Shown one piece after another: positions 6,601-64,000 of a stretch of 64,000 nt of DNA; position 1 is the stretch's first letter, and the number at the start of each line of letters is the position of its first letter. The notes beneath the pieces are model-generated. The model saw nothing but the letters and a program-made list of their open reading frames with translations. It was not told where the DNA came from and searched no databases. The stretch spans positions 5,208,001-5,272,000 of the forward strand of contig NC_087245.1 of assembly GCF_037042905.1 (NCBI RefSeq). The letters run 5' to 3'. Source of the stretch: Lytechinus pictus. Its lineage: Eukaryota. A program made the position numbers and the translations under genes.

Positions 6601-7307
6601 AGCCCCTTTCACAATTGAAGTACGACCTGTTTACAACCGCCTGCAACAATTTTTTCCCGTTGTTGCACGATCGATCTCTTGGTGTCTTGCGAGCACTCGC
6701 AGTCGTTGTAGACGATTGCACAAACTCGAGGTGGTCGTGACTGGTCGCATATGAACTTTGAAGATGTTCAAAATCCAAACGCGATCAAATACGATCGATT
6801 CACTCGCATCAGATCGTACCGTCGGTCTGGAGATCATCGTGTGAGTGTTGTTCAACGTTGCACGACTTGATGCGAGATGTGGCACAACTAAGTAGTCGCA
6901 TTTAGTCGACTGGAGGTCGTACAACACTTGCACATGTGCTAACGACCTACATGTATCATGTGTATAGGGACCAGTCTTACGACTGGGTGCGATAATAATT
7001 ATATAGGCCATAAGACTGTTGTAAGACCGATCGCAACACGGCTTACAACATTGCACTACCGTTGCATTCGCGTGTATGCGACCATTCCACTCGTGCAACA
7101 CTCGCATGTGATCGCACGAGCACAATAAGAGCATATGCGACTCACTCGTGCAACGGGGTTTACTGGTTGTTTTTGTTGTACGACAGTTGTTGCATTGTGA
7201 AAACCTCTGTGCGATCTTATAAGATGACTAGCGATAAATGCCTGTTGCAGCCTGTCGCACGACCAAAAGGTCGCAAATGGTCGTACGTCAATATTGTGAA
7301 AGGGGCT
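6601..7307. mobile_element. Non-autonomous PIF/Harbinger-like element (707 bp)
   Basis: TIR AGCCCCTTTCACAAT (6601-6615) / ATTGTGAAAGGGGCT (7293-7307); TTA target duplication at 6598-6600 and 7308-7310; interior rich in TCGTACGA/TCGCA subrepeats. Confidence 0.85.
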
Positions 7308-16577: not shown

Positions 16578-16924
16578 CTGGAAGATTTGACCGTTAAATA
16601 TATTGCAATAATTATACTCTCACGCAAAAAATGTTTGAAGTGCTTACCCCTTCATTGTTTGAGAGATGGGGGGTAAATAATTGCCTGAGTCCTCTTTTCT
16701 CCAGTGGTATACGCAAATTCCCATTCTTTTTATTTGATTTGTTCTTCTCTTTTATTCTTCTTCTTCTTCCTTTTCTTCTTCTTCTTCTTATTCCCTGTCC
16801 TCCTCCTCGTTCTTCTCCCTTTAATTGTTGCCACCCCTCACTGCATGTCAATTGTGTGTTGTCAGAATGTGTCAATTACAAGCGAAATATGATTCTATCG
16901 ATTGATATTTGTATATGTTTGATT

Positions 16925-17400
16925 TTTATTTTGTATTCATTTATTTACCACTCATGGGATGGCACAACCTATCAGCAAATGCTGCTTTTCGTAAGAGTCC
17001 ACGCACAAATAAAAAGTACAATCACCCATGGTTATAATAAAAGCACAAAAATCATAAAATATTGGTAAAACAAAGCAAAAATACAAAATATAATAATAAA
17101 GCAAATATTTATGAAAAACGATAAAAAAACGAAAAGAGAACTAAGAACTAACTTCTGATTAATATTATAATTTATGGGGCAAGGGATTGTTGGAGAGAAG
17201 AGAATGATGTAGGATTCGTTAACAGTAATCAGGACGAATTGTGGTGAGTATGTTTTTAAGATGTGTTTTTAAAGTAATTTAAAGATACAAATGGGAATTT
17301 TCTTTTCAATAGAGTTCCATATTCGGCACCTCGGTATCGTATTTCGTTTTTAGGTAATACGATTTACAGAGGTCTTATTTTTTCATGTTATTTTCTAAAT
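16925..17400 (-). mobile_element. 3' remnant of a CR1/L2/Crack-like LINE
   Basis: Minus strand encodes fragments resembling IRYRG..IWNS and FK.HLK.Y (typical ORF2 C-terminus), followed by an AT-rich 3'UTR. Confidence 0.45.
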
Positions 17401-22836: not shown

Positions 22837-25800
22837 TAAATAAAGAGAGACCCTTATGTGTTAGAGAATAGATTTATGTGACGATATTTTCACACTGTGG
22901 ACACTTCGAGAGTGTAACTGTTCACAGCGTGGACCTGGTGGACTATGTGAGTATGCATGCTATTCACACTGTTGAAATGCTTAAATTTAACAGTGTAAAT
23001 GAGATTTCACACTGTGAGCACACTGTGACAGACACTGTTACATACACTATAGAACACTGTGTTCTTTCCAGGAGAGGAAAAACAACAACAAAGCCCCTTT
23101 AACGGTGATACAGTTGGAGCACCATTACAGATGTAATTTAGAACCTTTCTGTATTAAAAGGCACAAAAGCTGCTTACACTTACAGTGTGTTATCGGGTTG
23201 AACACACAAAAAGTTCAAATTTGGACCTTTGATCTTAGAGTATATAAAAATGACAAATGAAATCGTTCTTCTCGCAAATTGATGCTTGATATGGAGAATT
23301 TTGATAATGTTTTATTCATATATAAAGGTTAGATTTCTCAAATCAGAATAAATGTTTTACCCGTGTTGAACGACAGTCTAGATTATGACGGCTATGTAAT
23401 GTTTTTGACGCGAAATATAATTTATTCGGAATCACAGGCGTTCATTTCATTCTTGTTTAGTCTGGGGGGGGGGGGAACACGTACATACGTCCACCTGTCA
23501 TTTTCTTTGGGTTTAATGGACTGTTTTGGATATGATTTATATTTCATATTGATTCAGTTCTCAAGAGGTATGTTTACTGCTGATTGTATTCATAGGGAAC
23601 ATACAGAGATCATGGGGTCGTGGGACCAATGTGGTTCTAATTTATGAAACAGCTTAAAAAGTATATATTCGAGTAGTCATTTTGTGATCGTGAAAACCGA
23701 TGAATTGTGAAGACTTATTTTTTTTTTAAGAAATATCCCAGCCTACATTGATTTATGAACCAGAGCACACGGAATTTTCAATCTGTTAACCTCTCTCTGA
23801 TTATCCAACTTGTATCCAAAGTGAAGCATATTCGCTGCAGTGCTTTAAATTCCTATGGTTTTACTCCGCTCTGATATAAAATAAATTTGTTCTGATTAGG
23901 ATGCAAAGAGACTTTTGTTTAACTCTAGCTCTATGGTATGCATTCACTTTGGTCCAAACCTCAAGATTTGATATGTGCTTTATACAGCGCTTATCCCCTT
24001 TGCAAGAGAAGATGTCTAGACTGCATCTCACGCATGTCAGAAGAAGTTTTTAATAAGTAGCTCTTCACCATGAATAGAGAAGTCAATCATTACAGAGTTG
24101 TACATGTACTTTACTACCCTATACCACAGGAGATAGAATTTCGTTTCTCCTTCCTACCCATCTACTCATGTTCATGCTTAGGATTTCTATATCTTACAGC
24201 GATTATACTGGAAATTTACTTGAAATGATGCAAGTTTCATCCCTCGTCTTTTCCTTAACTAACAAGACAAATGAGGTCTTTGTAATACATTATATATTAG
24301 CTGCTAAACAAAACAAAAAATCCCCGAACGAGATGAGTTTGTATTTCAATAAGATAAATGTAAAATCACAACATAAAATATAGTGACATCACCGGTTCTC
24401 CCGTTTGCATTGTGAGAACGGTTTCATGAAATGCAAACATGAAAATATCGCAACATTCTTGTTATACATCAGAATTTCATTAAGTTTAGGATTAGATTAG
24501 CATACATGTTTCATTTTATTTATTTTCTTGATCAAATGAATGTCGGGAGGAACTTGACCTTTTTTCCTTTCTCGATCCGTTCTTACTCTTGGCTTCTCCA
24601 CTTCTTTCTCCAGCGTAATAGAGGAAGACACCTGATAATAGGTGTGCTGTCATGAGGCTTATGTGACTGTCATTTATCCTCGTAAGGGCACCAGAGGGGA
24701 GACACTAATATTCAAGTTAAATCAATTTTTCACCAGAAATATTCCTCCTTGATCTTCAATAATTATGAATGGCCACATTAGAGTCCTCATTCTTTCACTA
24801 CTCACCTCACCAATCTATTTTTTCCGTGTGTCATTTGGTCCTTATTATCATGATTATGGATATTGACAAGAAGCTCGCATGCCCTATTTGCCGTTTTAAG
24901 AATATCGATGCGTCCTTTGTCTCTTGGAATAGTGCGAAAAACCATCGGACATCCTCAACTTTCAAATGGATCTCACACATTAGCCTCTTCGGGATGTACA
25001 TGTACAGAATATATCTTCTTCTCTCATCAGGTCAACCAGTATGCTGTGAAGCACAGCTATTCTTAGAATTGAATTTGTTAAGGAGCAAGACCAGTAACGA
25101 AACAATATCGGACAAAATGTGGTCGGAGGGATGGTGGCTTCCTTCTAGCAAACCTCTCGTTTGAATGTCAAAATGAACCGCAATCTCATTTTCGATTCTG
25201 AAAAATGTCATCTTATTTTCAGAGGTTAAATGTGTGGGTGAATACGTTGAGGGTTAAAGGCATGACAACTAACTTTGATCAAAACAGAATTCTGCATTTT
25301 GGATGTTAACACAGACACGCCCTCCCTCCCTTACAATGGCACACAAATACACATAACCCAAACAGGACGATTTCATATTTTACACACCGATTCAAAGATT
25401 TGGCTTTCTAAAAACATCAAATATATACCTTTCATGACAGAGTTTTACTAATACTTTCCATATTGTGCCCATTGCACTGGCATTATTGGATGCATGCTTG
25501 CGATGCCGACACTCCTTAAGGTCTCTAAAACCGGCGCAAAGAATGTTCTACCTGCAGTTTAGGCCCTCCTTATCAATTCATTGTGGTCAGGTAGTGGCGT
25601 CAAAACTCACAAGCTTTGGGCAGTTAAGACAGTTTTCTCGTGGAATTAGACAGTCTCCATCACTTGCGATTTTCTGAAGAGCATTAAACCTCGTCTTTAT
25701 CTTAGTAGTTATAAGGTTGTATAATTCTATACTTTATTGCAAGCGCTTTGGGCCTAATGTGAAAACATAGAATATATAATAAGTAATAATAATCGATAAT

Positions 25801-47490: not shown

Positions 47491-47808
47491 GAGATCAAAT
47501 TTTTCTCCTCGATAACTTATAGTATGTTGACAATCGGCTGGTCCTGCAAACCTGTTTTGAAGGTATACCTTCGAAACTGATATACGTATCTATCTACCAA
47601 AATGATGTAAAGTCGACTAGTGAATTGGCTGAAGAGTAATATAACACTCTATTCCACTTCGCCAAGGAATTGGAATCTTGGTGAAGCTATGTGAAATTTA
47701 GGAGCTTCATTTGTAACATTTTAACTGTGAATTGATTTTTTTTTTGGCGTGGAAAAGTTCCTTGAGAGTGTAGCATTTCATGACAAATAGAAAATACAAC
47801 ACAGAAAT

Positions 47809-48820
47809 ATGACAATGGATGCCCATGATTCAGATGTAATGTCTTATTTGCCCGGGGAAGGACCAAGTCAAAATGCTAGCGATGGATTAGCTTATTGCGT
47901 TTATTCATATGAAAAACTCAAAAGAGTCAACAAAACTGGGTTTCAGTCCGAGAACGATTTCTTCTCCAACTTGACCAGGACATGCTACAATGTTAATAAC
48001 TTCACTTGCCCAGCATATATGTATAACCTATCTGACAATGAATTGATGGATCATTTAGCGTACATCATGCCGCCTGCGCATTATGAGTATGCATTTGTGG
48101 TACCGTTTGCAGTTATTATTCTTACGTTGGTAGTCTTTGGATTCTTCGGAAACCTCTTCACCATCATAGTGATCTTGCGGAATCGTGTCCTGCAATCCAC
48201 CTCCCACTATCTTGTGAGTTTAGCTCTCTCTGATATGTTGTTACTCGTGCTGACCGGACCCACGGAAATTCTGGTGGAACTCAAGTATTGGCCCTGGACC
48301 TATACAAAGTTTTTCTGTCATGCTCGATTCTTCCTGATAGAATTTTGTCTTTTTACGACAGTGTTGCACATAACCGCATTCACTATCGAACGCTACGTAG
48401 CGATCTGTCACCCGATCAAAGCCAAAGCGTTCATCTCAACCTCTCGTGCCATTAAATTCATTATCGCTATCTGGATCTTAAGTTTTGTCATCAGCATCCC
48501 TTTGGCTCTCGCTTACCACCTCAAACAAGCGTGCGTCGGAATCGAAGAGTCCACCGTCTGCCAGACCACAGATGAAATGGACAGTCGGGTCAACCATTTC
48601 TACGTCTTTTCAGCAACGTTTCTTTTTCTACTCCCCATGACTCTCATCATCGTACTCTACTCGCTCATCGCCCGAGTCCTCTTCGGTGTCAACATCAAGG
48701 TCCCCATGAGAAGATCGAGTTCCACGAAATGTCGTATTCGGGTCAATGGAAATCTCAAGGCCAAGGAAGACAAAGAGGACCAAGTTATTACGATGCGAAA
48801 ACAAGTGGTTAAAATGTTAG
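47809..48820 (+). CDS. Class A peptide GPCR (GHSR/MLNR/NMUR/NTSR/TRHR-related), coding exon 1: N-terminus, TM1-TM5, ICL3
   Basis: ORF shows GN (TM1), LALSD (TM2), WPW..FFC (ECL1/C3.25), FTIERYVAICHP (TM3/ICL2), W in TM4, FLLP (TM5) and RKQVVKML. A canonical donor TTAG|GTAAGC lies at 48820/48821; the exon is 1012 nt, so the intron is phase 1. Confidence 0.95.
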
Positions 48821-49165
48821 GTAAGCAATGTTCGTCTTTCTTTGGTTTTTGAGTGGTTTGTGTGTACTCTAAGATTATTAATGATTTCCATTTAAAAATA
48901 TATATAATGAATATTATCATCAACACTAAAAGTATTAACAAGTATCGAGAGGAAAGTTTTTTGTGAGATAATGTCCATCTCAAGTCTCCGATCCATTTCT
49001 AGAAGTTATTAAACAGATCGATTATTTGCTATGTTCATACCCAATTTGAACAATAAAATGAAGCAGTTTGGCAACAATTATTGATAGAGCAGTGAGATCT
49101 AGCCTACTTAAAGGGGATCACGCCTTCTTTTTCTCACAGTATATAGGAGGATGAAACTCTTCTTA

Positions 49166-49326
49166 GAGACGCACCATTAGATATCCGGGGGGGGGGGGGG
49201 CTGGAAGTTTTTCCCAAAAAATGGAGCAAGGAAAAAAAAAGCTTTGCTCAAAGAAGAAAGGAAAAAAATTGCATCAACCCAAACTTCCAGGCCCCCCTTG
49301 TCCCTGTTTATCTAATGGTGCGTCCC
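49166..49326. mobile_element. Small Harbinger-like MITE in the GPCR intron
   Basis: TTA|GAGACGCACCATTAGATA ... TATCTAATGGTGCGTCCC|TTA, with an internal G-run. Confidence 0.8.
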
Positions 49327-49582
49327 TTATACAATTAAGTTTGCATGAAAAATTGATAAAATCGCAGAATAACATTTAAAAAAAAGGAAAATGGAAATAT
49401 TGGACAATAAGAAATTGATGAGAATGTCGAAATCAGTCTGGAGATCCTCCCATTGACAATACAACCAAGATCTATGATATGTCACAGTACAACTATCCTC
49501 TTTTACTCTGAAAAGATATTACAAACCCTTTGTCCATGGTATGGCATATGAAACCTGTATTTCATATCCTTCCATTACACCC

Positions 49583-49745
49583 GGTGAAGCTGTTCGTAAA
49601 GTTACGCACAACTTTACGCACGACTGGAACATGTTCTTATGTCTTAAATGAATGACATAGGGATGTATCATCAAGCACAAGAAGGGGTCACCAGTCGTGC
49701 ATAAAGTCATTCGTATCTTACGAACAGCTCTATGAAACACCCACC
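49583..49745. mobile_element. Relative of the 16419-16577 MITE in the GPCR intron (left end deleted)
   Basis: AAGCTGTTCGTAAAG...ACGACTGG / CCAGTCGT...CTTACGAACAGCTCTATGAAACACCCACC. Confidence 0.75.
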
Positions 49746-50216
49746 TGATTGGATAGCCTTGATAAAACTGACAATTCAAATAAAATATGTAGTCCTACAA
49801 GAAATAATGGTGTTGTAGAAGTGTGACATTACACATTTCGGCCGCAACATTAGCGATTAGCGATCTCAACATTCAAGCGCTCTCAACCTTATTATTTGTT
49901 CATTTTTTTCAACTATCATTGATTCGTTTCTTTGATTTTCTGTTTTCACACAAGCTTACTTGTTCTCAGGGGTTTCATTCTCCTGTTCTTATAAACCTAG
50001 TGAGGAGTTGCCTGGTGTGATGGCAACTTTGTTTTACGTCAAATGATACAGACCTGATCGAGTTATTTAAGATTGTTTTGACGTTTTAGGTTAAAAAATT
50101 ATAGCCACCTCACTTCCTACCTTTTGGCTCTTTTGATCTTGTCATTGTTTCCATGCACAATCTTCTTGTTCTTCATTAATACTGTTCTTTTTTACTATTT
50201 TTTCTTGATTTTGTAG

Positions 50217-50536
50217 TTGTGATCGCGGCTAGTTTCTTCATTTGCTGGTTCCCGTTTCACCTGATCCGCATCTTGCCCTTCTTCAATTTGGATAGTTGGC
50301 CTCAGCATATCAAAGACATCTACTACAGGGGGCTTTATCACTTCTCAATCGTTTTGCTCTATGTCAGCTCCGCCATCAACCCCATACTGTACAACGTGAT
50401 GTCTGCAAGGTTTCGTCGCGCCTTCAAACAGACCATACTCTGCCGCGAAGTAAGCTCCCCCCACAATTCAATGACCACACGGGGTCATTCGACTTATATA
50501 ACCCGCATGTCGTCCATTAATAGTTCAGCTCTGTGA
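50217..50536 (+). CDS. Class A peptide GPCR, coding exon 2: TM6, TM7, helix 8 and Ser/Thr-rich tail. Spliced protein is 443 aa.
   Basis: A long polypyrimidine tract ends in TTGTAG| at 50216. G+TT restores the frame as KML-V-VIAASFFICWFPFHLIR. CWxP and NPILY motifs and helix 8 'SARFRRAF' follow, with TGA at 50534-50536. 1012+320=1332 nt. Confidence 0.95.
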
Positions 50537-51975
50537 GGGGAGAAACAAGATAATTAATTGCTTAATCTTTTGAGAAAATTAAGGCTTTACAATTCGATTA
50601 CGGGAATTTAATTATTTCTTTGGCAGCTATATACTGGGAAGGTTGTAATCTTCCAAAAAGATATTGACGGGATATAAGGATAACGATTTCGTGATGGCAA
50701 ATACGTGACAATTTTCAGGTTTCTGACTACAGATAGTATTTAATGCTGTATCTTTCCCGCCCAGTACAGTGAAGAGTCTCGTTACGACCTTCGTACTCTG
50801 TGGGTACGGCGGTTCTTTGGTGAAATCCAGTCATGCCTGGATCGAGCCCTACTGCTGAACTGATCAACGGATACAGTCTGATCAAGACCTCTCAGTCAGT
50901 TAGGACTAGTTTAGCAAGATGATCGTGATGATCAACAGCGCTCTGGCTCACAGCTCAAATATTTTAGAAATCAAGATATTCGAGTAGATCACCAGGGCAA
51001 TCGATCAAGGTCGAATGGCGCCGATCATGGGAGATTGACTCCGTGTGTCTTGCCGAACTAGATCGACCAGACTGAACTATGTCTTGATCGGGCTTCATCA
51101 AGTAGATTAGTAAGGCAGTGGGAAACAGGTATTTTAAATCCTCCTAACTCAATTCAAGTGAATGCTGGTAGCCTCGGACGAATGGCCAAACATTTAAGAA
51201 TAGTTCCGATCTTTTACTGAAAGATTAACAGTCCTTTTATGGACAACATTACATGATGTAAAAGCAAACCTTATCAAGTTCCCATATTGTTTGTTCCGTA
51301 TCTTTGGTATCCAGATCCACCACAGGCAAATATACAACTGAGTCCAAACTTTTATATTAGTTAATACTAATATTTCTTAAATCATAAGTTTACTTATGAT
51401 CTAACTTACAATTTACTCCTTTACTTACAATTTACTCCTAACCCTACAAGCAGCCGTCGACGGGTCAATGTAGATATTATTTTAGTATGGGACTGAACAA
51501 CAAATGAGATCATGCTTATCGCATCCGAGATTCTCAGGTTTGAGAAGAATACTTTTTTGTAAGAATTGGTTTGGTGGATAAATGAATCAATCGCTTTATA
51601 TGTATATAAACGAAATCCATTTCAAGTGCAATGATGATTATACCGGATTATACCTCCATCATTGTTATGGAATTAAAATTACCGTTTGAATCAAGGAACA
51701 TAAAAACGATCATTAGTATTTATTTTACATTCAATAACTTAGAATACAGTTGACAATGGTTGATATGGAAAATGATGACGTACCCAGTTGTAAATTTCTT
51801 GTTGTAAATAGTGTCGATCAAATTGATTAACTCAATTGATATTCTTTAGTACAAGATGCAAAATGTTCTTGAAAAGGCAATCGAAACATCGAGTATCGTT
51901 TGTAATAATTTTTTAATAATCTTTCTTTTTCATTTTTTTAACCCTTTAAAATCATTTTTTTTTAAATGACACCAA

Positions 51976-51981
51976 AATAAA
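51976..51981 (+). terminator. Candidate polyadenylation signal for the GPCR (3'UTR ~1.45 kb)
   Basis: First AATAAA I found downstream of the stop codon; weak evidence in AT-rich DNA. Confidence 0.3.
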
Positions 51982-52410
51982 CATTCGTTATATCAGTACG
52001 GTCTTTCCCCCTTTAGTGATGCTACTACCAAGACGTTGTTTCTGATAAATAGAACATCAGCGACTCCATTCAGTTACAGCTTTGATATATAGAATCACAA
52101 CGTGTACAAGCTAAGCGATTACACTCATCTCATCAAAAATCACATTGAAATCGGTACAAATAATCGGGAATTTACCCACGCGCGATTAAAAAATTAATAT
52201 ACTTTTGATGGACATTATTTTTTAGATGCATATCAAATTATATATAAAAACACATACAAGTGTGAGAAATTATACATGTACAAAAGCTTTGGCAACTCTA
52301 TTAATATAAATGTTGTGAAAGAAATGGGGGGGGTAAGAGAACAATAGAAGGCGTATAGCGTAAAGTTCCCCAGAGGGTTAATCGGATCGAGTTGTCCTAG
52401 CACCATCCCT

Positions 52411-52488
52411 TCTCTGTGGTCTAGTGGTCATGGTGGTTAAGGCACCGGCGTTCTTAGCTGGGGGCCCGGGTTCGACTCTCGGCAGAGA
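52411..52488 (+). pseudogene. tRNA-Glu-like pseudogene or SINE head
   Basis: TCTCTG...CAGAGA acceptor-like pairing, A-box TGGTCTAGTGG, arm CCGGC/GCTGG, and GGCCCGGGTTCGACTCTCGG T-arm. A 9-nt extra segment in the D-loop and a non-canonical anticodon loop argue against a functional tRNA. Confidence 0.65.
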
Positions 52489-54736
52489 CATATATGAAGC
52501 CTCGCCAAATTGCCAAAAGGTAGGATAAACTCTGGGAACATTTCTTCAAGATGGGTATATTTTGTATTATTATAGTCACAGGTAACCGTAGACGAAATAT
52601 AAGCTGGTAATGTGTATAGAGTATACGCGCGCACATTGTTTGCGTTAGATATCATAGAAAAGGGGAGGGTGGCGCCGAGATAGTTTGATACGGGTGGGGA
52701 CCGGGGAGATGGCCTACATAACAGAGCTCCATGTAGAGCTACACAGTGTAGATCTATCTTCTTCTTTTTTTATAGCATTCCTTCCCAATGGTCCCCTTTC
52801 ATTCATTTTCTTCCTCTCTTTTCTTCACTATTAAACTACCGATCAGCTCCCATGGGCCTATAGGAATAACGTGACTGTACTAAGGGTGACACAATTGCAA
52901 AAAAAAAAAATGAGTGAAAATATTTACATAATAACTATTATCTTACTGTTGCTACTTGTGCCTGATAGGCCATGCCCCCACCTGAAAAACCAAACCCAAA
53001 AATAGAGAAAAATAAAGAAAAGGAAAAGGGTAATAAATAAGATAATCTCTCAATATTATGTCAAACTCTTTTTTTAAATCACAAAATCGATGTTTTTATT
53101 GATTTGCTCGCAGCTTCTTAGAATTTGGCCCCATAGGTAAATCATATTTTGCCCAATCATTATTTTGCCTCTTTACGTCTCTGATTGTAGCAACAACAAT
53201 CATCTCTTATTATGTATAAAGCATTTCTTGTCTATCTGGCAGGTCGTTTAGCATTTGACCTAGGCCTGTTGTCCATGTTTATTCGAATGTGGCTCTCATG
53301 GCACTTGAGATGCAAGAGGGTTTGAAATATCCTGTGTCTCAGAATGATAGAGTACGCTTGTTGTTATTTCATGTCCTTAAAAGCTTTTACTTACATTCTC
53401 ATTTTCAATAGATTTAAAAGCTCATTTCACCTTTATTATTTTCACACCCTTGGACAAGTCTTTATAAAAATCATGAAGTGAAGGATCCGTTTCTGATGCA
53501 ACCCCATGTAACTTTTTAAAAGTAGCTTGTATGATAGGCCTATATCACCTTAAATGTATAATTTAACTTACCATACTTATCAGGAGTTTATTATGCATTG
53601 GCCTGGGGATTCATGGCTTTGATGAATGTGCATCTTTTTGCAAATAACTTCGAATTTTCCAACATTTTTAAACAATTAAAAACAAACATGTACAATATGT
53701 TTGATAGGGCTCGACAGTCATAGATGAACCATATTTAAGTATTCAATATCTTCTTGAAAAGAGGGATTCAATATGAAAGCAAATATAAAAGCAACTTATT
53801 TATTAAGTTTTGGAGGTAGATTCTAGACCAACTTTAAAAAAATGCTAGCTTAAGGCATAATATCCATGATTTTTTCTGTTCCTTTTTATGATAGACTTCT
53901 GCACAACGTAGATTTGAATAAAGCATTAAAATTAAGAGGTATTCCACATCAATTTGAATAGGGGTTAAACTTACCAAAGGGAGGTTAAAACTTACCAGAG
54001 GTTACATTATATCAGGCATGCTTTATTTCTAATTCTAAACCTTTATCACCTTCTTGTACCTCAAGCACTAAAGTAAGATGTGCGCTCGTATCTTTCTTAT
54101 TTCATGTAAGGTGTTAGTATCCGACTCCAATTTGTTTTTCTTTATCTGTCATACCGCCCAGATTTCGAATCTCTCTACTATTGTGTTTGCAATTTGCAAA
54201 ATCTATTTTGGATTTGCAGAATATGTAAAGAAAATATTAAACGTACTAAAATATTAGAAAAAATAAATCCGTTTACTGCGGATGTTTACGGAAGGAGACC
54301 GCACATGGCACTAAACAGAAAGAAAAATGTATTCCTATTTTTGGAATAAAAATTAGAAATGTAACAGTAACACATTAGAAAATGTGTGTATTACTTTCAT
54401 TATGGCGTCTCTTGATCACGAATGATAATTTTGGAAGGGTGACCCCCAAAATAAACCGTGTTCCTTAACTCTATTTTAGTGATATCCTATGATCTATTTG
54501 AAGCACTGACTTACGACTGATGTTTCTTATTTATGCTTATTACAACACTGAACCTTACTGCTGAACTTTAATGATACAATTCAGTGTATGGCTACTACGG
54601 CGACTGCTACAGCTGATACTACCTTTACTACTACTACTTCTACCACCACCACTACTATACTACTACTACTACTACTACTACCACTGCCACTACTACTACC
54701 ACCATGCACCACCACTACTACTTATACTTCTATACC

Positions 54737-54772
<36 letters not shown>

Positions 54773-55483
54773 ACTACTTATACCAACACTACTACTACTA
54801 CTTCTACTACTACTACTTCTATAATACTACTACTACTAATACTACTTCTACTGCTACTCTTACTACTATTCCCTCTCCCCTGATCATATTGTGTTAAAGC
54901 CATCGGATCATATAGCTTACATTTTGTATTACTTCCAGTTGTGCATTCATCTCTCTTGCATCAGTTTATTGAGACTATTTACCCGAAGTATCCCCCCTTC
55001 TTCCCATGCTTTTCTCAATTCATCTTGTCAAGTAAACTTCTCATGGCCGCCCTTACGTGACCCATGCAATTAAACCGCCACCTCCGAATCTCATGAATTT
55101 CCTTACCCTTACTTACAGCGTCACTGCAAAAATAGTAACATTATCAACAGTATTACTATTTCGATTACCAATACCTTTACAAGCAACATGATTAGACTAC
55201 TACTTCTATAACCACTACTACAACTATCGGTACTACTACTTTTCTTTCTATTTTCCGCTTTTTCAACCTCTGCTTCAACTAGTTGGCACATATTCCAATC
55301 CAAATACATCCAACTATAAATGTTTACTACTACACCGATGAACTTATTACTACCATATTACAATTTTTACTGAGGCAATACGTCTACGACCGATGCGACT
55401 TCAACGTCAACAGTAGCAGCATCAGCAACTATTACAGGCTTCTACGACGACGACTACTAGTATTACTTCTCCTTCTACTGCTT

Positions 55484-55535
<52 letters not shown>

Positions 55536-55714
55536 CTACCTACCATTTTACTACTACTACTACTACTTTTACAACGACTTCCACAATTACTAGTACTGCT
55601 GCTATACTACTACTAAATGCTGCTACATGTGCTACTATTTAGACTACTATTACTTTTACCACTCTTGCACTACTACCATTACAGGACTACTATTATTATT
55701 ATTATACCAATACT

Positions 55715-56350
55715 CTGCTTCCAGTGGGAGAGGCAGTGGTGCTTCAAGATAATGTGGATAAACGCATGCATTGTTTGTGCATTTGGAGTATATCATACTT
55801 TTATTCCTTTTGTGCAGGTGTAAAAACATGTATACAAGTGTAAATAAAACAGTTGTGCTGATATTACTGAACCTGCATCCCACTCGAGAAGACTCTGAAA
55901 GGCATCAAGAGATAGAGTGTGAACTGGATCCTGTTTGGAGATTTTCCTTGTCGATTCTTGAGACGAAGGAAGAAGCGTATATATCTTGAAATAAGATCCA
56001 TATTCTCTAGTTCTTGATGACAATTCCTGAATAAAGGACTAACAGGCAATATCACCCAAGTTGAATCGTTTAAGGAACAACATGTCTTTGACGATGTATG
56101 ATGAGCAAACGATTCCCACTTCAGGATTATGCATGGACGTCATATTTGAGATGAGGATTTTCAGGATGTAGTCACCAGTGTCGTAACAAAGACTACCGAG
56201 TGTGTGGTTCACATCATGTGACAATAGTGCCTGAAGTTGCAACTCCAGAAGGCGGAGACAATTAAAGTTAGCCTTCTTTACCTAAGCATCTATGAGTATT
56301 GAAGTTGATATTCTGGTCAATGTAGAGACCAAGGTATTGTTTACAGGCTT
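55715..56350 (-). mobile_element. Decayed LINE ORF2 3' fragment inserted in the (CTA)n field
   Basis: Minus strand reads 'KQYLGLYIDQNINFNTH' (KYLG.ID..L.F..H thumb motif) and 'LSLDAFQSLL' (SL..FK tail), then a T-rich UTR. Confidence 0.6.
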
Positions 56351-56405
56351 CACTATATACCGCACGGCTATGCTATTAATACTACTACTTATACTACTAC
56401 GACTA

Positions 56406-56637
56406 CACTCTAAATTACAGGGATTTAAAACAAGTCCACATGGACTGTAGTTAGGGACCAATCGAATTCCGGATTTAGTTTGAATCCTTAAGATTCATTT
56501 TTAAATCTCGAAAGATTTAAATTTAAATCATTTGAGATTTAAATTTAAGTCGTTAGGATTAAAACTAAATTCAGAAATCGATTGGTCCCTAGCTACAGTC
56601 CATCTGGACTTATTTTAAATCCCTGTAATTTAGAGTG
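56406..56637. mobile_element. Palindromic MITE (CACTC..GAGTG, TA flanks), well-paired arms
   Basis: CACTCTAAATTACAGGGATTTAAAA...GTCCA.ATGGACTGTAG.TAGGGACCAATCGA and its reverse complement at the right end. Confidence 0.9.
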
Positions 56638-56645
56638 TACTACTA

Positions 56646-56854
56646 CGCTCTAAAGATCAAGGATATATAATTAATCCACATCGGATTTGTTGGAGTTATT
56701 TTAAATCTTTGGGATTAACTTTCAAATCTCAAAAGATTCAAATCTTTCAGATTTATATTTAATTCTACAAGGTTTAAAACTAAATCTAATATTCGGCTGG
56801 TCACTATTCACAGCCGATCTGGATATATTTAAAATCATTGATTTTTTTAGAGTG
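56646..56854. mobile_element. Older related palindromic MITE, 8 bp from the previous one
   Basis: TA|CGCTCTAAAGATCAA ... TTGATTTTTTTAGAGTG|TA; interior resembles 56406-56637 (AAATCTC.AAAGATT, AAAACTAAAT). Confidence 0.7.
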
Positions 56855-58279
56855 TACTAACAGTACAACTACTTGTACTGCTGCTACTACTATTACTAAC
56901 AGTACTACTACTTTTACTACTACTACTGCTGTTAAACTAATACTTATGCATGCACTACTACTACTACCTCGACTGATATGGAAACTTCTACCTACACTAC
57001 TATTTATGTTGCAGCAATTTAGAATACTTTTTATTTACTATTACCATCACGTATCCCCCCCCCTTTTTTTTATTATCTACTACCAAAGATCATACGACAC
57101 TTAACTCAATTTTTCACCCCGGCAATTACCAAACTCACAAATGAACTAATGCTACAATATCGCGACTTATTGTTCTTTTCATATCGTTTGCTTTTTAAGC
57201 ACTATGCATATTATGTGGAAGATTATAGGCGGCTGGTTTTTCTCTTGTCATGAAAACAAGCCTTGTTGTCGGTTCCATCACTAATACTCTTCATTTTGAT
57301 AATTCTTCCCCGTTATACGCATCTTATTTTTACTTGTTCATTTTCCTCCCTCTGTTGAGAAAATATTGTCTCAATACTGTAAATTGGTGATGAAAGCGCA
57401 GAATTGTGTTGCTAAAATATACTGCAATATTTGTATTCCAAGCTGTGATCTTGGTACTAAAGATCTAACGTTTAAATGACTTCAAAGACACCTTCATCTG
57501 GAACAGATTAAATGCGGAAAAGTAATGTAAAGAAAATGATACGTTTAATTATCGAAAATCCATGATTCACTCTGAGGTTTTCTTTATTGGGGTGTCTAAT
57601 GTTGCGTACAGGTGATTGGACCAAGCTCATTATTTCATTTCTATCATCGGCCCTCAAAATACCTGACACAAATGATTCTACATTTAGATCCTCAATCTTT
57701 CGGGAATACATTGATACATTCGCGCCAAGCATGAGGATAATTATGGTGATTAAAAACTAGAATTCTCTTTTTAATTTGTTATAGCTGAGTAGTTAAAGCA
57801 ACTGACTGGAAATAAAATGTTCATGGAATCTATGACCGCTACGACTCTTTATTTTAAGCATCTATGGATCTATTGATATCAAACGTACGTTTGTATGTCA
57901 CGGTTTAAATTCAACGTTCACAGAGACCGAGGTGTTTTTTTTTCTTAACCCAACTTTATTTTGTTTATGTATGTATGCAGCGTGGTCTGAATGTTTTAAT
58001 CCAAGTAGAATTAATAATCTTGCAATAGTGGTAATGCCGGAAACATTTCAACTATGAGCAGCCGAGAAGCCATTTAGTTTATGAACAGAATATCTGTGTG
58101 GCAGTTACAATGACAATGATTTTATTGGACCCATGTCACTCTCATTCAGGTATTTAAAAATAATGATATGAAATAATTTATTCAAAAGTATTCACAAAAT
58201 ATTTATATATTTACAGAAATAGTGAAATAATTACTTACTAACTGGCAGCAGTTGCTCTCATAGCATAACCGCTTCAAAT

Positions 58280-58913
58280 TCAATTTTGTTTGTGTGCGCG
58301 CAATCAGGCGAGTGTCTGAATATAAAACATTTCCAGTTGTACTCACGTTCGCATTAGTGGATTGGTGATATAGATTTGCTCTTCATGATTTCCTAAAAAC
58401 AGTCTTTAGAATGCCCTTTTTTTGTCTGAATATCAAAAGTTTTCAGCTCGCGCTTCGCGCTCGCATTATTTGTTTAGTGAAATACATTTGGTCTTAATGA
58501 ATTTCTACAAAACTAGCCTTAGAATGCATCTATTCTGGTCTGAAATTCAAAATTAGTGAGATAGCCTACGGATCATGTTCATGATTACAAAGAATACAAA
58601 AAGTGCTTCATGTGTTTCTAAAAAAAATCAGGAAGCGCATTTTAGATGACTATTGTGAGATGTGTATGCTCTTCATGAATTCCCCAAATATAGTCTCTAA
58701 AATGTTTCTGTTTGAGGTCAATACATACAAAAATTTCAACTCGCGCTTCGCGCTCGCATTGTTTGTTTAGTGAGATAGGTAGGTTCCTACGTATCATGAT
58801 TACAAAATTTTGCTTCAGTATAATGTCCCTTTTTTTCGCGCGCTCAAAAATTGTGACTCAAATTTTTTACTGGTGCCCCCCCCCCCAACGCTGTGACCCA
58901 CGGTACGCCACTG
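58280..58913 (-). mobile_element. Partial hAT-like non-autonomous element with tandem units containing CTCGCGCTTCGCGCTCGCATT
   Basis: Terminus TACGCCACTG (reverse of CAGTGGCGTA) at 58904-58913 after a C-run; repeated units at ~58447 and ~58740; the other terminus was not found. Confidence 0.55.
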
Positions 58914-61900
58914 TGTGTGTGTGTGTGTATGTATGAAATAGGGCACATGAAATCATGATGGGGAATAGAAACAATGAAGAAAATCAATGGGAAAACAATT
59001 TAGAAAGAGAGGAGTTGACGATTTATTGAGACCAATTAGAGTATTGTGAAAGAGCAATCCTCAATTTATGTAGGATTAATAGATGAAACAACTAAAATGA
59101 CACTTTATTTGGCATTTTGAGCTCACTTATTAATTATCACTGGGAGGTATACAATTATTTAAATTGTTGATTAGTGTTGTTTTCGACACACGAGAGCTTA
59201 GGCAGTCTTAACCGAGTGTTGGAAATAGAGAAAGTTTATTCGTTTCTGATTGTTTACAAATTTATAACAAAGACCATATTTTTTTTATTTCATTTTATAT
59301 CACTTAATTGATTTCAAAAATTCACGAAACCTCTAGGGCTTTATATTAGAATATTTCATATTATCACGTGGTGCTTGCATTCAAAGGCACAAAGATATCC
59401 AACCTTTAATTCCGAATATGGTCTTTTAATAAAGTTGCGTTTGATATCTTTGAGTTTTGTGTGGTGGCGTACACATCTTCTTTCTTCCTTTCCCCTTGTA
59501 ATGTTTCAAAAGCGGATTTTTTTTTCCCCTCTCTCTCTTTCTTTCTTTGTTTCGGGGTGCGGTTGTAGAATCAGTATTTCAAAAAGCAAAATGAGATTTT
59601 TTTTTTTACTATTTATTGTCACTACCTTTAAAACTTCACCAGTTTACATCACTTATCAACTTAATACTTGGTAAATCTCTGTTTCTCACTTTTCATGCAG
59701 TAGGTTTTTAGAGGTTTTTCTTTCATTCACGTTTATTTATGTTCATCATAATTTCCTTTGTCCATTTATTTTTCTATTCATTTAATTTTCCTTTTCTTAT
59801 TCGATTCTTCTATCCGACAGATTGTTATTGAAAATGACACAATCATTTCACTCATATCTGCTTTTATATTTCAGTCATGTTACTTCCAATTATTAAGAAA
59901 AAAATTGCTTAAAGTAATCTGAATCAGTGGCTTACCTTTGACATTTTTTTTCAATCGCGTTCACTCACGTTTTGCACCCATATTAAAAGTTCAATCTTCA
60001 CATATTTTATCTCGAATCTATTCTTTATTTTCACTTGCTTGAAATATTTATCACTGCTTTTTTCTGTTGTTGTTTTTGTTTTACTTTAAGGTGGGCGTGC
60101 CGAGTTCTGCGTGTCATCGACAAACGACTACTACAACAACTGTGATTTGAAGAACCATGAATGGGTACTTCACATTATAACATTGAGAACATTATTTGTG
60201 GAGTGTTTATGTTCAAACTCCCTACTAACCATGCTAACGTTATGATAGTCTGAAAGACTTGATATTCCGGTGTAGTCTCATTGATATGCTTTTCTAGGCT
60301 TTAGATATTTACATAAACTGTTTTCAATATAAAACAGTACATTTCCTTTATGTAAATGTTATATGTTTGACCAAATTTATTTAATTACAAAAGTCGATTT
60401 GGGTAGTCCGCAGGTCATCAAAAGATGGCCTTTGCATCTTAATCATTAATTTTGCATGGCTTACGCTAGCTTTTTGTCTTTCGAAACATGGATAATAAGT
60501 TCTACTGCCAGCAAGCAACTAACAATTTGGCGAGGAGCTCAGATGAAGGAATAGTAAAAGTTGTTTTCTAGTATTTCATTTCAAAAGAATTAAGATAAAT
60601 AAAAGACAATTTGGTTTTGGAGGTCGTGAAAATAGTTAAAATAAACAAGTATATTTACTTAGAATATCGCCGCTAAAGGTTATGTGAGCTTGAAAACGTT
60701 TCACAATCTATTAAAGCTGAAAACATAAGCATACAAAAGTTATAAATTACCTAAAATTTTGTATGTATATATATGTATGTATACATGATTGTGTGTGTAT
60801 GTATATATATATTTTTTTTCATATACGTTACTAGCTTCACTAAAAACGGGCCTATTTATTGATCTTGATTTCATGTTTGATTTGAATGGTTGAAGGGAAA
60901 TTTTTTTAGAACAAAAGGATTAGTCAAGCTATTGGGCAATATCTTTAAACTAATTCCCCTTTAACCATGAAATTGAAACACGAAATCAACACCAAGTGAT
61001 GGAGTATATGCGAATGCTTTGCTGACTTGGCCAAAGTAGTGACGAACATATACAATTTGGGATGTCAAAATCTTAATTTAAAAAAAATATATATATATTG
61101 ATCTGGTGAGATGTCGAAGAGTGATAATTAGAGAAATGTTCAGAAAGATATTCATTCTGCTGCATGCTTGTTTCATACCATCACACTAATATTATGTACA
61201 TCTCCGCTGAACGCAAGGTGCCAATTTTCCTGGTCAACACGAACTGCATCAGTCATTTCACAGATAAGTGCGGAAATAGAAATAGAAGATGAGCAAAACA
61301 GACAAGTCTCATTTGAAACACAAAGGCATTTTCTTTGGAAGCTGTCATCAATCTAACAGAAATTGGCAAATCACTGGCCTACCATTCGAGCTAATATTTT
61401 GTTCTTGGCTATGTTTGTTCTTGCATCAGTGTAAAATGGTATTCACATAATATATTTTATGGAAATAGCGCCAAATTTGATATGTGGTCGCAGTAAACAC
61501 GAATGTGGCCAAAATATGTCATATGGCTTAAGCAATCTATACTTATCTGTTTGTTCAACCTGAATAGCCAAATACACAACAAAGGGACTAACGATATAGA
61601 TATTTTCAACAACAAAAGCTCGTTTTTATAAGACAGTATGCGAATTTTTCGTTACTAAATATGACTAAATGTCGCAATCAAAGTAGGCCACTCTTGGGCA
61701 GCGGGGTTAATGTGATATGCATGAAAGAACTTCAGCTAAAAAATTATGTCACTAATACATTATTTTCTTTATTCTACTAACAACGTGACCCGGTATCTAC
61801 TGAAATGTTTATGTCATCCGTTTGCTGGTTACGTGACTTTGTTTCCTTTTTATCTTATAATTTTGTTTCCTCAGCTTAGTAATGGCTTCAAGAAAAAATA

Positions 61901-63753
61901 TCAAATCCACGAAACTCTCCTTTCCCTTAATATTGTACTTATCTGCTTTCGATATTTGTCATGACATTTCTCCAACTTACATTTCTTTATTATTATTTGA
62001 TCATCATAACTGTTCCAATATTGTCATCTTATATTATGTTATTTAAATCGCTTAATTATCTCGCTTCCATGATACCATATCCTAGATAACGCTGCCGCTA
62101 TATGAATCGAACAGTGTGAGCCTCATCTTATGTGAAGCAATAATGTCCCTCCCTGTATAGGCATGTATTTCAAAGTTCGTAATGATAATGAGTCGTTATC
62201 TATCATAACACAATTCATCTACAATATTCCTCCGCTTAAAATTGATTGAAATTGTATCATATAGATATATTTTTTAAATTACTGTTTAATGTAATCATTG
62301 TAGCGTCTTGAACTTCGTGTTAGATTATGTGTTATGAGGTGTTTGTATGTTGAAAGCTTTATTACAGGTATAAATTCATACAAAAACAACAACAAAGATC
62401 AAAACGAAAAACAGTGTTACCTGTGTGTGTAATATCTAATGATATTGAATATGACAAATTATTATGTTTAATTGATAAATGTTTGATTTTCTTAATAAAA
62501 ATAAAAACTTTCTAAAACTATTTACCATAAAGTCACAACACTTTCTTTTTTAAAGATACGACAAAATTGATTATTCACTTTTGTAAACCATGTTAGATCC
62601 CAAATTTTTATATGAAATAGAAAGCAAATAAATGAATTATGTGTAAAATATGCATATTTGCATAATAAATTATGCATAACTTAATGGTTTAATATGTCAT
62701 GCATCTAACAATGCTTTCAAGTAGATTGCCTAATAGGCTGGTAGTGACAATATTCGTTGTATTGTTGGGGCGAATCAGCCCCCGGTCTTTAACGAGGGAT
62801 TAAAGGAGGTTAGATGAAACGTTTGACAAAAAAGATAATAAATTTCTACTGGTCACTCAGATTCATAATATACAATAAGAACTTTTGCAATCTGCTCTTG
62901 ATTTGCTCACGAAGTGGCCAATGTATTTTTTCAACTTTTTGCTGAAATCATTAGAAAAATCCAAAATAACTACGAGGAAGCCTTGCAACTGCAGTAGCCA
63001 CCGATCATTATAAATTCCTATGAAATAAAAGCTTCTTAATTCACATATTCCTGTTTGTTGTCTTGACCCTTCCATTCCTTTCTAATATAAGTACAAATAC
63101 AGCAACAAACCACAGAAAACCGCAGATAAACCACAGAAAAAGTACAAAACCTCTTATTCAATAAGACATGTCCTTTCCTCTACCACTGCTTTGAACATCC
63201 TTGTTCAATTTCAACATTATGTGCATGTTCTTAACTCTAACCTGTAGAGTTAGAATTAAGAAAAAAAAACACGTCCAACACAAGAATATCGTATGGTGCC
63301 CACTTTTTGCAGACTATATTGAGACATCTTAACTACCCCACCCCGAAAGTAGAAGGTCTTTAACAACCCGACGATGATTGTTGCAATTTCATTTTATTTA
63401 ATAATCGTTTCCTTTGTAATCGTTATACTTTTCTCTATTATTTTATTTCTTTTTACATGTCATCAATCAGTATTTCAGATTATTGTGATTGTTCTGTGCG
63501 TGTAGCTCTGTGGCCTATGTGTTGTTTTGTTATGTTTTGTTTTATATTTTTGGTTCAATAGACCATGAGTGAGACTCTAAAATATAACGCAGTAGTCACT
63601 CAACAGTTCAGCCATGCGGGCAGTCCTGTTACATTTCTATCTACTAATGACAAGAAAAAGTGCATTGATGTTTTCAGGGAAGCACCTTCAATTTACTGGA
63701 CTAGAATAGATGAAAGATATTAACCTGATGTATACCTGCCTGTGGCCTTTTAC

Positions 63754-63953
63754 CTTATAATGTTTTTGATGATAAGACGGAACTGACCGACATATTTATG
63801 AAAGTAGGAAAATAAGGCCCCTGTTACAAAGGCGTCGGCTTTGAAGCTTGCCCCGACGCCTACAATTTGAAGCCGCCTCGAGATCATTATTATTACCCCT
63901 GTTATATACACACAATCCGGCTTCATGTCGCCTATTTTCGTAACACGAGTCAC
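63754..63953 (-). other. Possible internal exon of a minus-strand gene entering from beyond the window
   Basis: ATTTCAG|GTG acceptor and ATAAG|GTAAAA donor bracket 200 nt that are open in one frame (VTRVTKIGDMKPDCVYITGV...); no family recognised. Confidence 0.2.
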
Positions 63954-64000
63954 CTGAAATTTCATTTAACTGTTTGTAACTATAACTATATTGTCTGCCA

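Follow-up and report, generated by a model that had tools for sequence, protein, structure and literature searches.

The locus between positions 47809 and 50536 of the window (the whole stretch of 64,000 nucleotides of Lytechinus pictus DNA that was analysed) raises the question of which family of peptide receptors it belongs to. An earlier note, made from the sequence, had read it as an orphan receptor that joins a pocket of the ghrelin/NMU kind to intracellular loops like those of TRHR. We consider it reasonably probable that the gene and its orthologs form a separate deep branch of the superfamily that holds the NMU/pyrokinin/capa, the ghrelin/motilin and, by similarity, the neurotensin receptors, with the TRH receptors as next relatives, and that they would respond to an amidated peptide with a penultimate Arg through Gq and calcium. 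In kind the gene is ordinary, and relatives have already been predicted under the misleading automatic names 'GHSR type 1-like', 'neuropeptides capa receptor' and 'pyrokinin-1 receptor'.

Gene structure and expression

The gene model has two exons (47809-48820 and 50217-50536, + strand) separated by a GT..AG intron, and the spliced reading frame of 1332 nt comprises 443 codons and a stop, giving a class-A GPCR of 443 aa. Coding exon 1 (47809..48820, + strand), recognized by its ORF and a phase 1 donor (G|GTAAGC), encodes residues 1-337 and the first base of codon 338, and holds a Cys-containing, N-glycosylated ectodomain of about 95 aa, TM1-TM5, ICL3 and the first residues of TM6. Coding exon 2 (50217..50449, + strand) follows the acceptor TTTGTAG and contains TM6 (CWFPFHLIR), ECL3, TM7 (NPILY) and helix 8, ending in ...QTILCRE. 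Both exons match Pfam 7tm_1 (9.2e-38 and 5.5e-8, respectively); the window has three other ORFs that reach 130 aa, none with a Pfam match.

Intron 1 (48821..50216, + strand; 1396 nt, GT..AG, phase 1) is defined by its splice signals and by contig joints. In the runs X1 and X2, which we guess to be probably RNA, one contig each joins 48817 to 50214 and skips 1396 nt (GT..AG, cut +3); given three ambiguous letters, this joint is the same as the 48820|50217 boundary. Behind it, the contig pieces 50214-50451 (X1) and 50214-50391 (X2) are joined to exon 1, which is itself covered by contigs of both runs, with a few stranded RNA reads from X19 and X20 in addition. The evidence of expression consists of the X1 and X2 contigs and these few raw reads. 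The spliced two-exon model proposed in the earlier note is thus borne out by the splice signals and by the intron seen in the contigs of both runs. The 5' untranslated region (47500..47808, + strand) is given at its minimum length, since record 1 of the X1 contig is colinear over 47500-48115 and continues upstream.

The locus is an intact, transcribed gene for a rhodopsin-class peptide receptor; the cross-phylum conservation, the contigs spanning the intron joint and the intactness of the motifs rule out a pseudogene or a chance ORF. A high-copy repeat with inverted arms (49585..49748, no strand; arms at 49599-49627 and 49691-49719) lies inside intron 1 and is not part of the receptor. Its summed contig depth runs into thousands, with many loose ends and joints to the opposite strand.

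Receptor class, copy number and orthologs

Judged from the protein sequence, the L. pictus receptor belongs to the class-A GPCRs, as it carries the 7tm_1 domain, all of the x.50 anchors (N115, D142, R195, W222, P276, P350 and P393) and the cysteines of the C3.25-ECL2 disulfide (C170 and two in ECL2). The motifs E194-R195-Y196, C347-W348-F349-P350 and N392-P393-ILY are intact. Counting from the anchors places P151 at 2.59, E153 at 2.61, C170 at 3.25, E178 at 3.33 (codon 48340-48342), F351 at 6.51, H352 at 6.52 and R355 at 6.55 (codon 50267-50269), which reproduces the whole of the numbering given earlier.

The gene is single-copy in the L. pictus genome, the next paralog being just 33% identical. 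Two other urchin loci were considered as paralogs and rejected: G000:C17:13911578 encodes a generic QRFP/CCK/orexin-like receptor and was kept as an outgroup, and G000:C12:18597041 encodes a serotonin-type receptor and was dropped.

Each of the five echinoderm classes (urchins, starfish, brittle stars, sea cucumbers and feather stars) has orthologs, as do hemichordates (acorn worms). The identity amounts to 95% in Lytechinus variegatus (P0001), 85% in S. purpuratus, about 50% in starfish, brittle star and sea cucumber, and about 47% in hemichordates; the crinoid ortholog is P0112.

The ligand pocket

In the alignment, E3.33, F6.51, H6.52 and R6.55 are the common state of the NMUR, pyrokinin (PK), capa, GHSR and MLNR receptors. 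The description of the pocket as a mixture of ghrelin and NMU family hallmarks does not hold, as these families have the same four residues. By the same comparison, the E3.33-R6.55 pair with F6.51 and H6.52, which in GHSR is the E124-R283 salt bridge (PMC7438500), is not diagnostic of GHSR. The TM2 motif P2.59-x-E2.61 was correctly called NMUR-like rather than GHSR-like: NMUR and PK receptors have the same spacing and GHSR/MLNR have one residue fewer (PMC9019041; PMC7438500). In GHSR, D99 and R102 (TM2 P2.58-x-D2.60 and R2.63) are needed for ghrelin function, whereas in the L. pictus receptor D2.50 and the TM2 proline stand one residue further apart, the acidic residue is E and not D, and the third position after it is not Arg.

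In NMUR2 the C-terminal Arg-X-amide of NMU is bound by E2.61, E3.33, R6.55 and S7.38 (PMC9019041); the L. pictus receptor has all four, as E153, E178, R355 and S381. Together with F6.51 and H6.52 they are kept across the ambulacrarian clade, with the exceptions of D3.33 in the crinoid and M6.52 in the second sea cucumber paralog. Residues specific to the clade are T2.57, a hydrophobic residue at 4.60, Y5.39, Y7.35 and I/L7.39.

Phylogenetic position

In two ML trees the ambulacrarian receptors form a clade with high support (100/99 and 99/98), which falls outside NMU/PK/capa (99/97), GHSR/MLNR (100/100) and TRHR (100/98). This agrees with the placement, in the earlier note, of an invertebrate-deuterostome receptor near the base of the GHSR/MLNR/NMUR group, as the clade branches there and inside none of the families. 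The ML phylogeny that the note had recommended, here with GHSR, MLNR, NMUR, PK/capa and TRHR sets, showed no nesting inside a TRH-type or NMU/pyrokinin clade. The deep position is unstable between the two trees: with far outgroups its sister group is NMU/PK/capa (88/72), and without them it is GHSR/MLNR plus NMU/PK/capa (95/83). In AU tests, neither a union with GHSR/MLNR and the amphioxus receptor (p 0.21) nor one with TRHR (p 0.14) was rejected, and a union with vertebrate NMUR was disfavoured (p 0.025).

The trees cover the NMU/PK/capa, GHSR/MLNR and TRHR sets, and what the clade represents may be the counterpart in Ambulacraria of NTSR, GPR39 or ETHR. Deuterostome orthologs of ETHR, including S. 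purpuratus SPU_027212, were proposed by de Oliveira et al. 2019 (PMC6660194). The Saccoglossus member of that data set is a different gene from that of the ambulacrarian clade, and none of the hemichordate sequences in the set has the clade's TM3 motif.

Relationship to known receptor families

A possible but doubtful reading makes the gene a somewhat diverged ambulacrarian ortholog of the bilaterian NMU/pyrokinin/capa receptors, with a ligand that would be an unrecognised NMU-like PRXamide peptide. The sister position in the tree with outgroups argues for it, as do the best matches outside Ambulacraria, which are pyrokinin-1, capa and NMU receptors, and a query of the urchin genome with bird NMUR1, which had the L. 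pictus receptor gene as its top match and brought up no further NMUR-like gene. The likeness to NMUR1/NMUR2 and PK/capa receptors takes in ERY, CWxP, NPxxY, C3.25, S5.42, F6.51 and H6.52, as well as the P2.59-x-E2.61 spacing, E3.33, R6.55 and S7.38, the latter group being the same as in NMUR2 (PMC9019041). Nevertheless, vertebrate NMUR1 and the protostome PK/capa receptors form a group that excludes the ambulacrarian clade (99/97 and 99/95), and the second tree, as well as the AU test with vertebrate NMUR, also speaks against the union. With human NMUR2 the tick PK1R, a true protostome NMU-type receptor, reaches 230 bits, against 184 with NTSR1; the L. pictus receptor reaches about 144 (summed) with NMUR2 and about 162 with NTSR1. 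That a tick receptor should be far closer to NMUR2 than a deuterostome ortholog would be unexpected, and since the L. pictus receptor, unlike the tick one, scores lower with NMUR2 than with NTSR1, a plain NMUR ortholog is not what it is. Moreover, the signatures of the NMU family, taken from our own alignment and not from a published definition (G2.57 and G7.39 family-wide, Q6.54 in protostomes, D6.54 in skate NMUR1), are all replaced, by T2.57, I6.54 and I/L7.39 in all members of the clade. The L. pictus receptor also differs from NMUR by its long Cys-containing N-terminal ectodomain, and by L4.60 and V5.35, where NMUR has the N and Y that hold the terminal Asn of NMU. The automatic name 'GHSR type 1-like' would imply a ghrelin/motilin-type ortholog with a ghrelin- or motilin-like ligand, which we regard as very unlikely. 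Such an ortholog would share with the L. pictus receptor the E3.33-R6.55 pair, which splits the pocket in GHSR, together with F6.51 and H6.52 (PMC7438500), a hydrophobic residue at 7.39 as in GHSR/MLNR, and an intron that interrupts the coding sequence between TM5 and TM6, and the AU test did not reject the union. However, neither of the two ML trees joined the clade to GHSR/MLNR, and the TM2 spacing and the missing counterpart of R102 set the receptor apart. A query with P0336, a MLNR/GHSR-family receptor that the tree places among the motilin receptors, ranked the L. pictus gene fifth in the urchin genome, after generic peptide receptors. Of the groups compared, GHSR/MLNR show the least identity to the L. 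pictus receptor in TM1 and TM4; they come close to last place in TM2 and TM5 and are last but one in helix 8. In a separate search, an owl motilin receptor query retrieved motilin and ghrelin receptors only.

That the gene is the ambulacrarian counterpart of the vertebrate neurotensin receptors, in which case a neurotensin-type system would predate vertebrates, seems unlikely to us, even though NTSR1 is the best-scoring of the solved receptors with both exons. Among the solved human/rat receptors, exon 1 scores 108 bits with NTSR1, 99 with NMUR2 and 96 with GHSR, and the TM6-H8 part 54, 45 and 42, respectively; ECL3 is of equal length and aligns almost gap-free, and TM7/helix 8 share SSAINPILYN and FR..F. 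These margins are small, though, and NTSR1 is also the second-best match of the tick pyrokinin receptor. The suggested kinship is one of similarity in these alignments. In addition, NTSR1 has R6.54 beside R6.55, R327 6.54 being a key polar residue of its pocket (PMC7438500), and in its place the ambulacrarian clade has I6.54 (I354). A TRH-type receptor, as the inner segments might hint, is extremely improbable. The L. pictus receptor carries ITAFTIERYVAICHPIKA and RKQVVKML, which correspond to the TRHR-like ITAFTIERY.AICHPIKA of TM3/ICL2 and (R)KQV.KML before TM6, and its ICL3 resembles that of TRHR too. The intracellular loops had been called TRHR-like, and ICL2, the start of TM6 and helix 8 are indeed nearer to TRHR than to GHSR or NMUR: at the end of TM3 and in ICL2 the identity is 67-70% with TRHR and 46-55% with GHSR/NMUR. 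The likeness is not exclusive to TRHR, as the same segment reaches 74% with the amphioxus receptor and 58% with pyrokinin receptors. As it is common to the amphioxus receptor and, largely, to the PK receptors, the TRHR-like ICL2 looks like retained ancestral sequence. A word search with TM6-H8 (25 candidates) also retrieved protostome 'TRHR-like' proteins, and the union with TRHR, as given above, was not significantly worse in the AU test. Against this, fish TRHR finds its best match (6.8e-42) in a separate urchin gene (G000:C2:58870666-58872415), which sits in the TRHR clade (100/98) beside a Ptychodera TRHR-like protein. This gene has Y3.33, Y6.51 and R6.52, whereas the L. pictus receptor has none of the pocket markers common to nearly all of the TRHR clade (Y3.33, N3.37, W4.60, D5.42, Y6.51, R6.52 and K/R7.39). 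The TRH-type ortholog is thus a different gene of the same genome, and TRH-type identity is for practical purposes refuted; the absence of Y3.33 had been remarked on in the earlier note.

Putative ligand and signalling

Returning to the reading as a separate deep branch, the residues that bind Arg-X-amide in NMUR2 are all kept, and the ligand would thus most likely be a peptide with an amidated C-terminus and a penultimate Arg. With roles as in human NMUR2, E2.61 would hold the Arg of the peptide, which S7.38 would contact too, E3.33 would hold the terminal amide, and R6.55 the last side chain. As in GHSR and NMUR, the pocket would have the E3.33-R6.55 pair as its floor. Where NMUR has polar residues to accommodate the terminal Asn of NMU, the L. 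pictus receptor has L4.60 and V5.35, suggesting a hydrophobic last residue in the ligand. Gq/11 is the signalling route of all the named relatives, and by analogy with them the L. pictus receptor probably couples to Gq/11, so that ligand binding would raise intracellular calcium.

The orphan status given in the earlier note stands, as no ligand or deorphanisation for the ambulacrarian clade was found in the literature searched, although older papers may already name the clade. An undescribed neuropeptide signalling system, as the note went on to propose, is a possibility and no more. We tentatively suggest, as one possibility, an ancient deuterostome/bilaterian lineage that is separate from the NMU, ghrelin/motilin and TRH receptors and may be the invertebrate counterpart of NTSR that has so far been missing, with an unrecognised Arg-X-amide peptide of echinoderms and hemichordates as ligand. 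If this were true, these animals would have a neuropeptide system that is so far undescribed in them. To our knowledge, no invertebrate ligands are known for the ghrelin/motilin or neurotensin systems, and for this reason the origins of these systems are unclear. Echinoderms and hemichordates are an outgroup for reconstructing which of the vertebrate peptide-hormone systems are ancient. Since the orthogroup is conserved, single-copy, expressed and basal, with an intact Arg-X-amide site, it is a concrete target for deorphanisation. Discovery of the ligand would reveal either diverged NMU-type signalling in Ambulacraria or a further ancestral system lost in vertebrates.

The C-terminal tail

The body of the 443-aa model stands, but its last 29 residues (50450-50533) are an alternative read-through tail. 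This tail (VSSPHNS...SSINSSAL and stop; 50450..50536, + strand) starts with a GTAAGC donor that directly follows CRE. At 50451 the X1 contig departs from the window sequence, to continue for another 179 letters, and contig depth is zero from 50464 onward. Similar read-through tails are present in Diadema and S. purpuratus models. An alternative distal C-terminal exon was sought within the window and not found there. It is located beyond the window, about 17 kb downstream (L025:3513-3632, equal to G000:C1:5275513-5275632), and matches the tail of the L. variegatus isoform X1.

Phylogenetic position of the receptor

The class-A peptide receptor encoded at 47809-48820 and 50217-50536 is an orphan belonging to an ambulacrarian-wide lineage that branches at the base of the NMU/ghrelin-motilin assemblage, of which neurotensin receptors are perhaps also part. 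The top protein match was from Lytechinus variegatus (95% identity), followed by S. purpuratus (85%). Orthologs with about 50% identity were found in Diadema, one brittle star, three starfish and sea cucumbers, another in one feather star and others with about 47% identity in three hemichordates. Beyond these the scores fall sharply, from more than 200 to about 150 bits and lower, the next matches being protostome pyrokinin-1, capa and NMU receptors. The gene is single-copy in this urchin genome, the next best locus being only 33% identical. Sea cucumbers have two paralogs (P0009/P0010 and P0014/P0017 (=P0397)), the second more diverged (K3.32, M6.52) and auto-named 'pyrokinin-1 receptor'. P0111 from the beetle Phyllotreta striolata (730 aa) matched over two stretches for 215 bits, a score that other insect pyrokinin receptors do not approach, and is probably the product of a gene model in which two receptor genes are fused.

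The 60 sequences used for phylogeny comprised the ambulacrarian clade, an amphioxus 'GHSR-like' protein, vertebrate ghrelin and motilin receptors, bird and skate NMUR1, NMU/pyrokinin/capa receptors of rotifer, mollusc, nemertean and arthropods, TRH-type receptors of fish, hemichordate, arthropods and nematodes, the urchin's own TRH-type gene and, as outgroups, three distant urchin receptors; NTSR, GPR39 and ETHR were outside this sampling. In the first tree (IQ-TREE, LG+C20) the ambulacrarian clade (100/99), NMU/PK/capa (99/97), vertebrate GHSR/MLNR (100/100) and TRHR (100/98) were each recovered, and the ambulacrarian clade was sister to NMU/PK/capa (88/72). In the second, with far outgroups removed and stricter columns, the clade (99/98) was sister to GHSR/MLNR plus NMU/PK/capa, which were joined at 95/83. 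AU tests did not reject its union with GHSR/MLNR (p 0.21) or with TRHR (p 0.14) and mildly rejected union with vertebrate NMUR alone (p 0.025). The deep placement thus differs between trees, and what is robust is a separate, well-supported lineage within none of the three families in the tree (NMU/PK/capa, GHSR/MLNR, TRHR).

Searches of the urchin genome with family queries bear on assignment to each of these families. A fish TRHR found another gene (6.8e-42), with two coding exons at G000:C2:58870666-58871322 and 58872176-58872415 (stretches L002/L021), which carries Y3.33, Y6.51 and R6.52 and lies within the TRHR clade beside a Ptychodera TRHR-like protein, so that the TRH-type slot is occupied. 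Bird NMUR1 retrieved the present receptor gene best (5.6e-29), with none closer, whereas with a MLNR/GHSR-family query generic peptide receptors came out on top and this gene ranked fifth. Against solved structures the two halves of the receptor matched NTSR1 best (108 + 54 bits), then NMUR2 (99 + 45) and GHSR (96 + 42), and the TRHR structure matched the first half only. A tick pyrokinin receptor, compared as a control, reached 230 bits against NMUR2, 184 against NTSR1 and 159 against GHSR; a protostome NMU-type receptor is therefore much nearer to human NMUR2 than the urchin protein is, which argues against plain NMUR orthology. The receptor may have a neurotensin-type affinity.

In De Oliveira et al. 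2019 (PMC6660194), SPU_027212 is listed as an echinoderm 'ETH receptor' that groups with genes of hemichordates. Those hemichordate entries are genes other than the ones in the ambulacrarian clade, the comparison being confined to the hemichordate members of that data set. The accessible portions of the reviews and surveys by Elphick, Semmens, Thiel and colleagues mention no ligand for such a receptor, and no deorphanisation of the clade was found in the literature searched; the clade may already figure under an NMU or GHS label in the trees of Mirabeau and Joly 2013 or Jekely 2013. The receptor is an uncharacterised new member of a known receptor kind, and a moderately interesting deorphanisation target.

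Ligand pocket and intracellular face

Counting from the anchors N115 (1.50), D142 (2.50), R195 (3.50), P350 (6.50) and P393 (7.50) gave P151 (2.59), E153 (2.61), C170 (3.25), E178 (3.33), F351 (6.51), H352 (6.52) and R355 (6.55), exactly the residues of the earlier note, which took E3.33-R6.55 with F6.51/H6.52 for a hallmark of GHSR and NMU receptors. E3.33, F/Y6.51, H6.52 and R6.55 with an acidic TM2 residue occur in all the NMUR, pyrokinin, capa, ghrelin and motilin receptors aligned and are missing from almost the whole TRHR clade (Y3.33, Y6.51, R6.52 and V/L6.55 instead), so the set is a superfamily character and not a mixture of family hallmarks, and the pocket is a common inheritance, not a chimera. 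The earlier reading was supported in part, in its placing of the receptor near the base of the GHSR/MLNR/NMUR group. Its view of TM2 as NMUR-like also held, since the spacing P2.59-x-E2.61 is that of NMUR/PK/capa, whereas in ghrelin and motilin receptors this stretch is one residue shorter and has Asp. This agrees with D99(2.60) of GHSR (PMC7438500) and E102(2.61) of NMUR2 (PMC9019041).

In NMUR2 the terminal amide of the ligand contacts E3.33, its last side chain contacts N4.60, Y5.35 and R6.55, E2.61 and S7.38 hold the penultimate Arg, and the salt bridge E3.33-R6.55 is conserved (PMC9019041); in GHSR the same bridge splits the pocket and is essential (PMC7438500). Like NMUR2, the urchin receptor and its whole clade retain E2.61, E3.33, R6.55 and S7.38; unlike NMUR2, the clade has L/I/V/A4.60 and V/I/L5.35. 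It also has fixed residues of its own (T2.57, Y5.39, Y7.35, mostly H7.36, and I/L7.39). From the retained and changed positions we infer a ligand class by analogy: an amidated peptide whose penultimate residue is Arg and whose last is probably hydrophobic.

The mosaic with TRHR-like inner segments proposed before is real, although TRHR is not alone in resembling the inner face. At the end of TM3 and ICL2, identity to the urchin protein is 67-70% for TRHR, 55% for GHSR/MLNR, 46% for vertebrate NMUR, 58% for pyrokinin/capa and 74% for the amphioxus receptor; in the same order the values are 45-53, 32, 34, 39 and 44% at the end of ICL3 and start of TM6, and 44-56, 27, 19, 48 and 31% in helix 8. 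In the outer half of TM6 they are about 20% for TRHR (29% for the urchin's own TRH-type gene), 44, 41, 41 and 29%. The simplest reading is that ancestral sequence was retained on the G-protein side. Gq/11 is the signalling route of all the named relatives, which makes Gq/calcium output likely for this receptor.

Gene structure and splicing

The sole long open frame of the 64 kb is 47809-48852, whose coding use stops at a phase-1 donor (G|GTAAGC, 48820/48821) and resumes at 50217, preceded by the acceptor TTTGTAG. The spliced frame of 1332 nt gives 443 residues and a stop, with a Pfam 7tm_1 match in both exon parts. This intron is spliced out in contigs assembled from two public sequencing runs on this organism that are listed only as probable RNA: position 48817 is followed directly by 50214, the 1396 letters left out have GT..AG ends, and, given three ambiguous letters, the joint coincides with the expected 48820|50217 junction. 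Exon 1 also carries a few stranded raw RNA reads of two further runs, in a single orientation throughout. The gene is thus real and spliced as proposed. The exon 1 frame extends 10 codons into the intron (48821-48852, GKQCSSFFGF, then stop), and intron retention would yield a five-helix truncated product; contig depth falls to zero past 48867 and the spliced form alone occurs in the contigs, which cannot show absence.

Of the proposed 443-residue protein the seven-helix core stood untouched and the C-terminus did not. GTAAGC directly follows TILCRE (donor at 50449/50450), the contig of run X1 departs from the window at 50451, with 179 letters beyond, and coverage is zero from 50464. L. variegatus isoform X1 is spliced at the identical point after CRE; its tail was not found within the 64-kb window and is matched (92% identity) about 17 kb downstream by a distal C-terminal exon at L025:3513-3632 (G000:C1:5275513-5275632). 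The last 29 residues are therefore a read-through alternative, and such a tail is predicted for S. purpuratus and Diadema too. With the distal exon the urchin protein ends in RDCV, and the C-termini of the orthologs from starfish, brittle star and sea cucumber read T-x-V/I, so that the main isoform may carry a PDZ-type C-terminal ligand.

In the glycosylated N-terminal ectodomain of about 95 residues (47809-48100, residues 1-97), several N-glycosylation sites and three cysteines (C30, C59, C67) are common to the echinoderm orthologs, as are two cysteines in ECL2; the hemichordate orthologs lack the three N-terminal cysteines.

The window is gene-poor over 1-47000 and 51000-64000, and the other ORFs of at least 130 aa (6631-7134, minus strand; 16631-17068 and 24769-25164) have no Pfam match. 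The intron holds a very high-copy repeat with 29-nt inverted arms at 49585-49748 (also 49210-49323 and 49894-50007). Its contigs add up to depths of thousands and show numerous loose ends and 'opposite strands' joints, so it is a dispersed, MITE/SINE-like element transcribed from many places.
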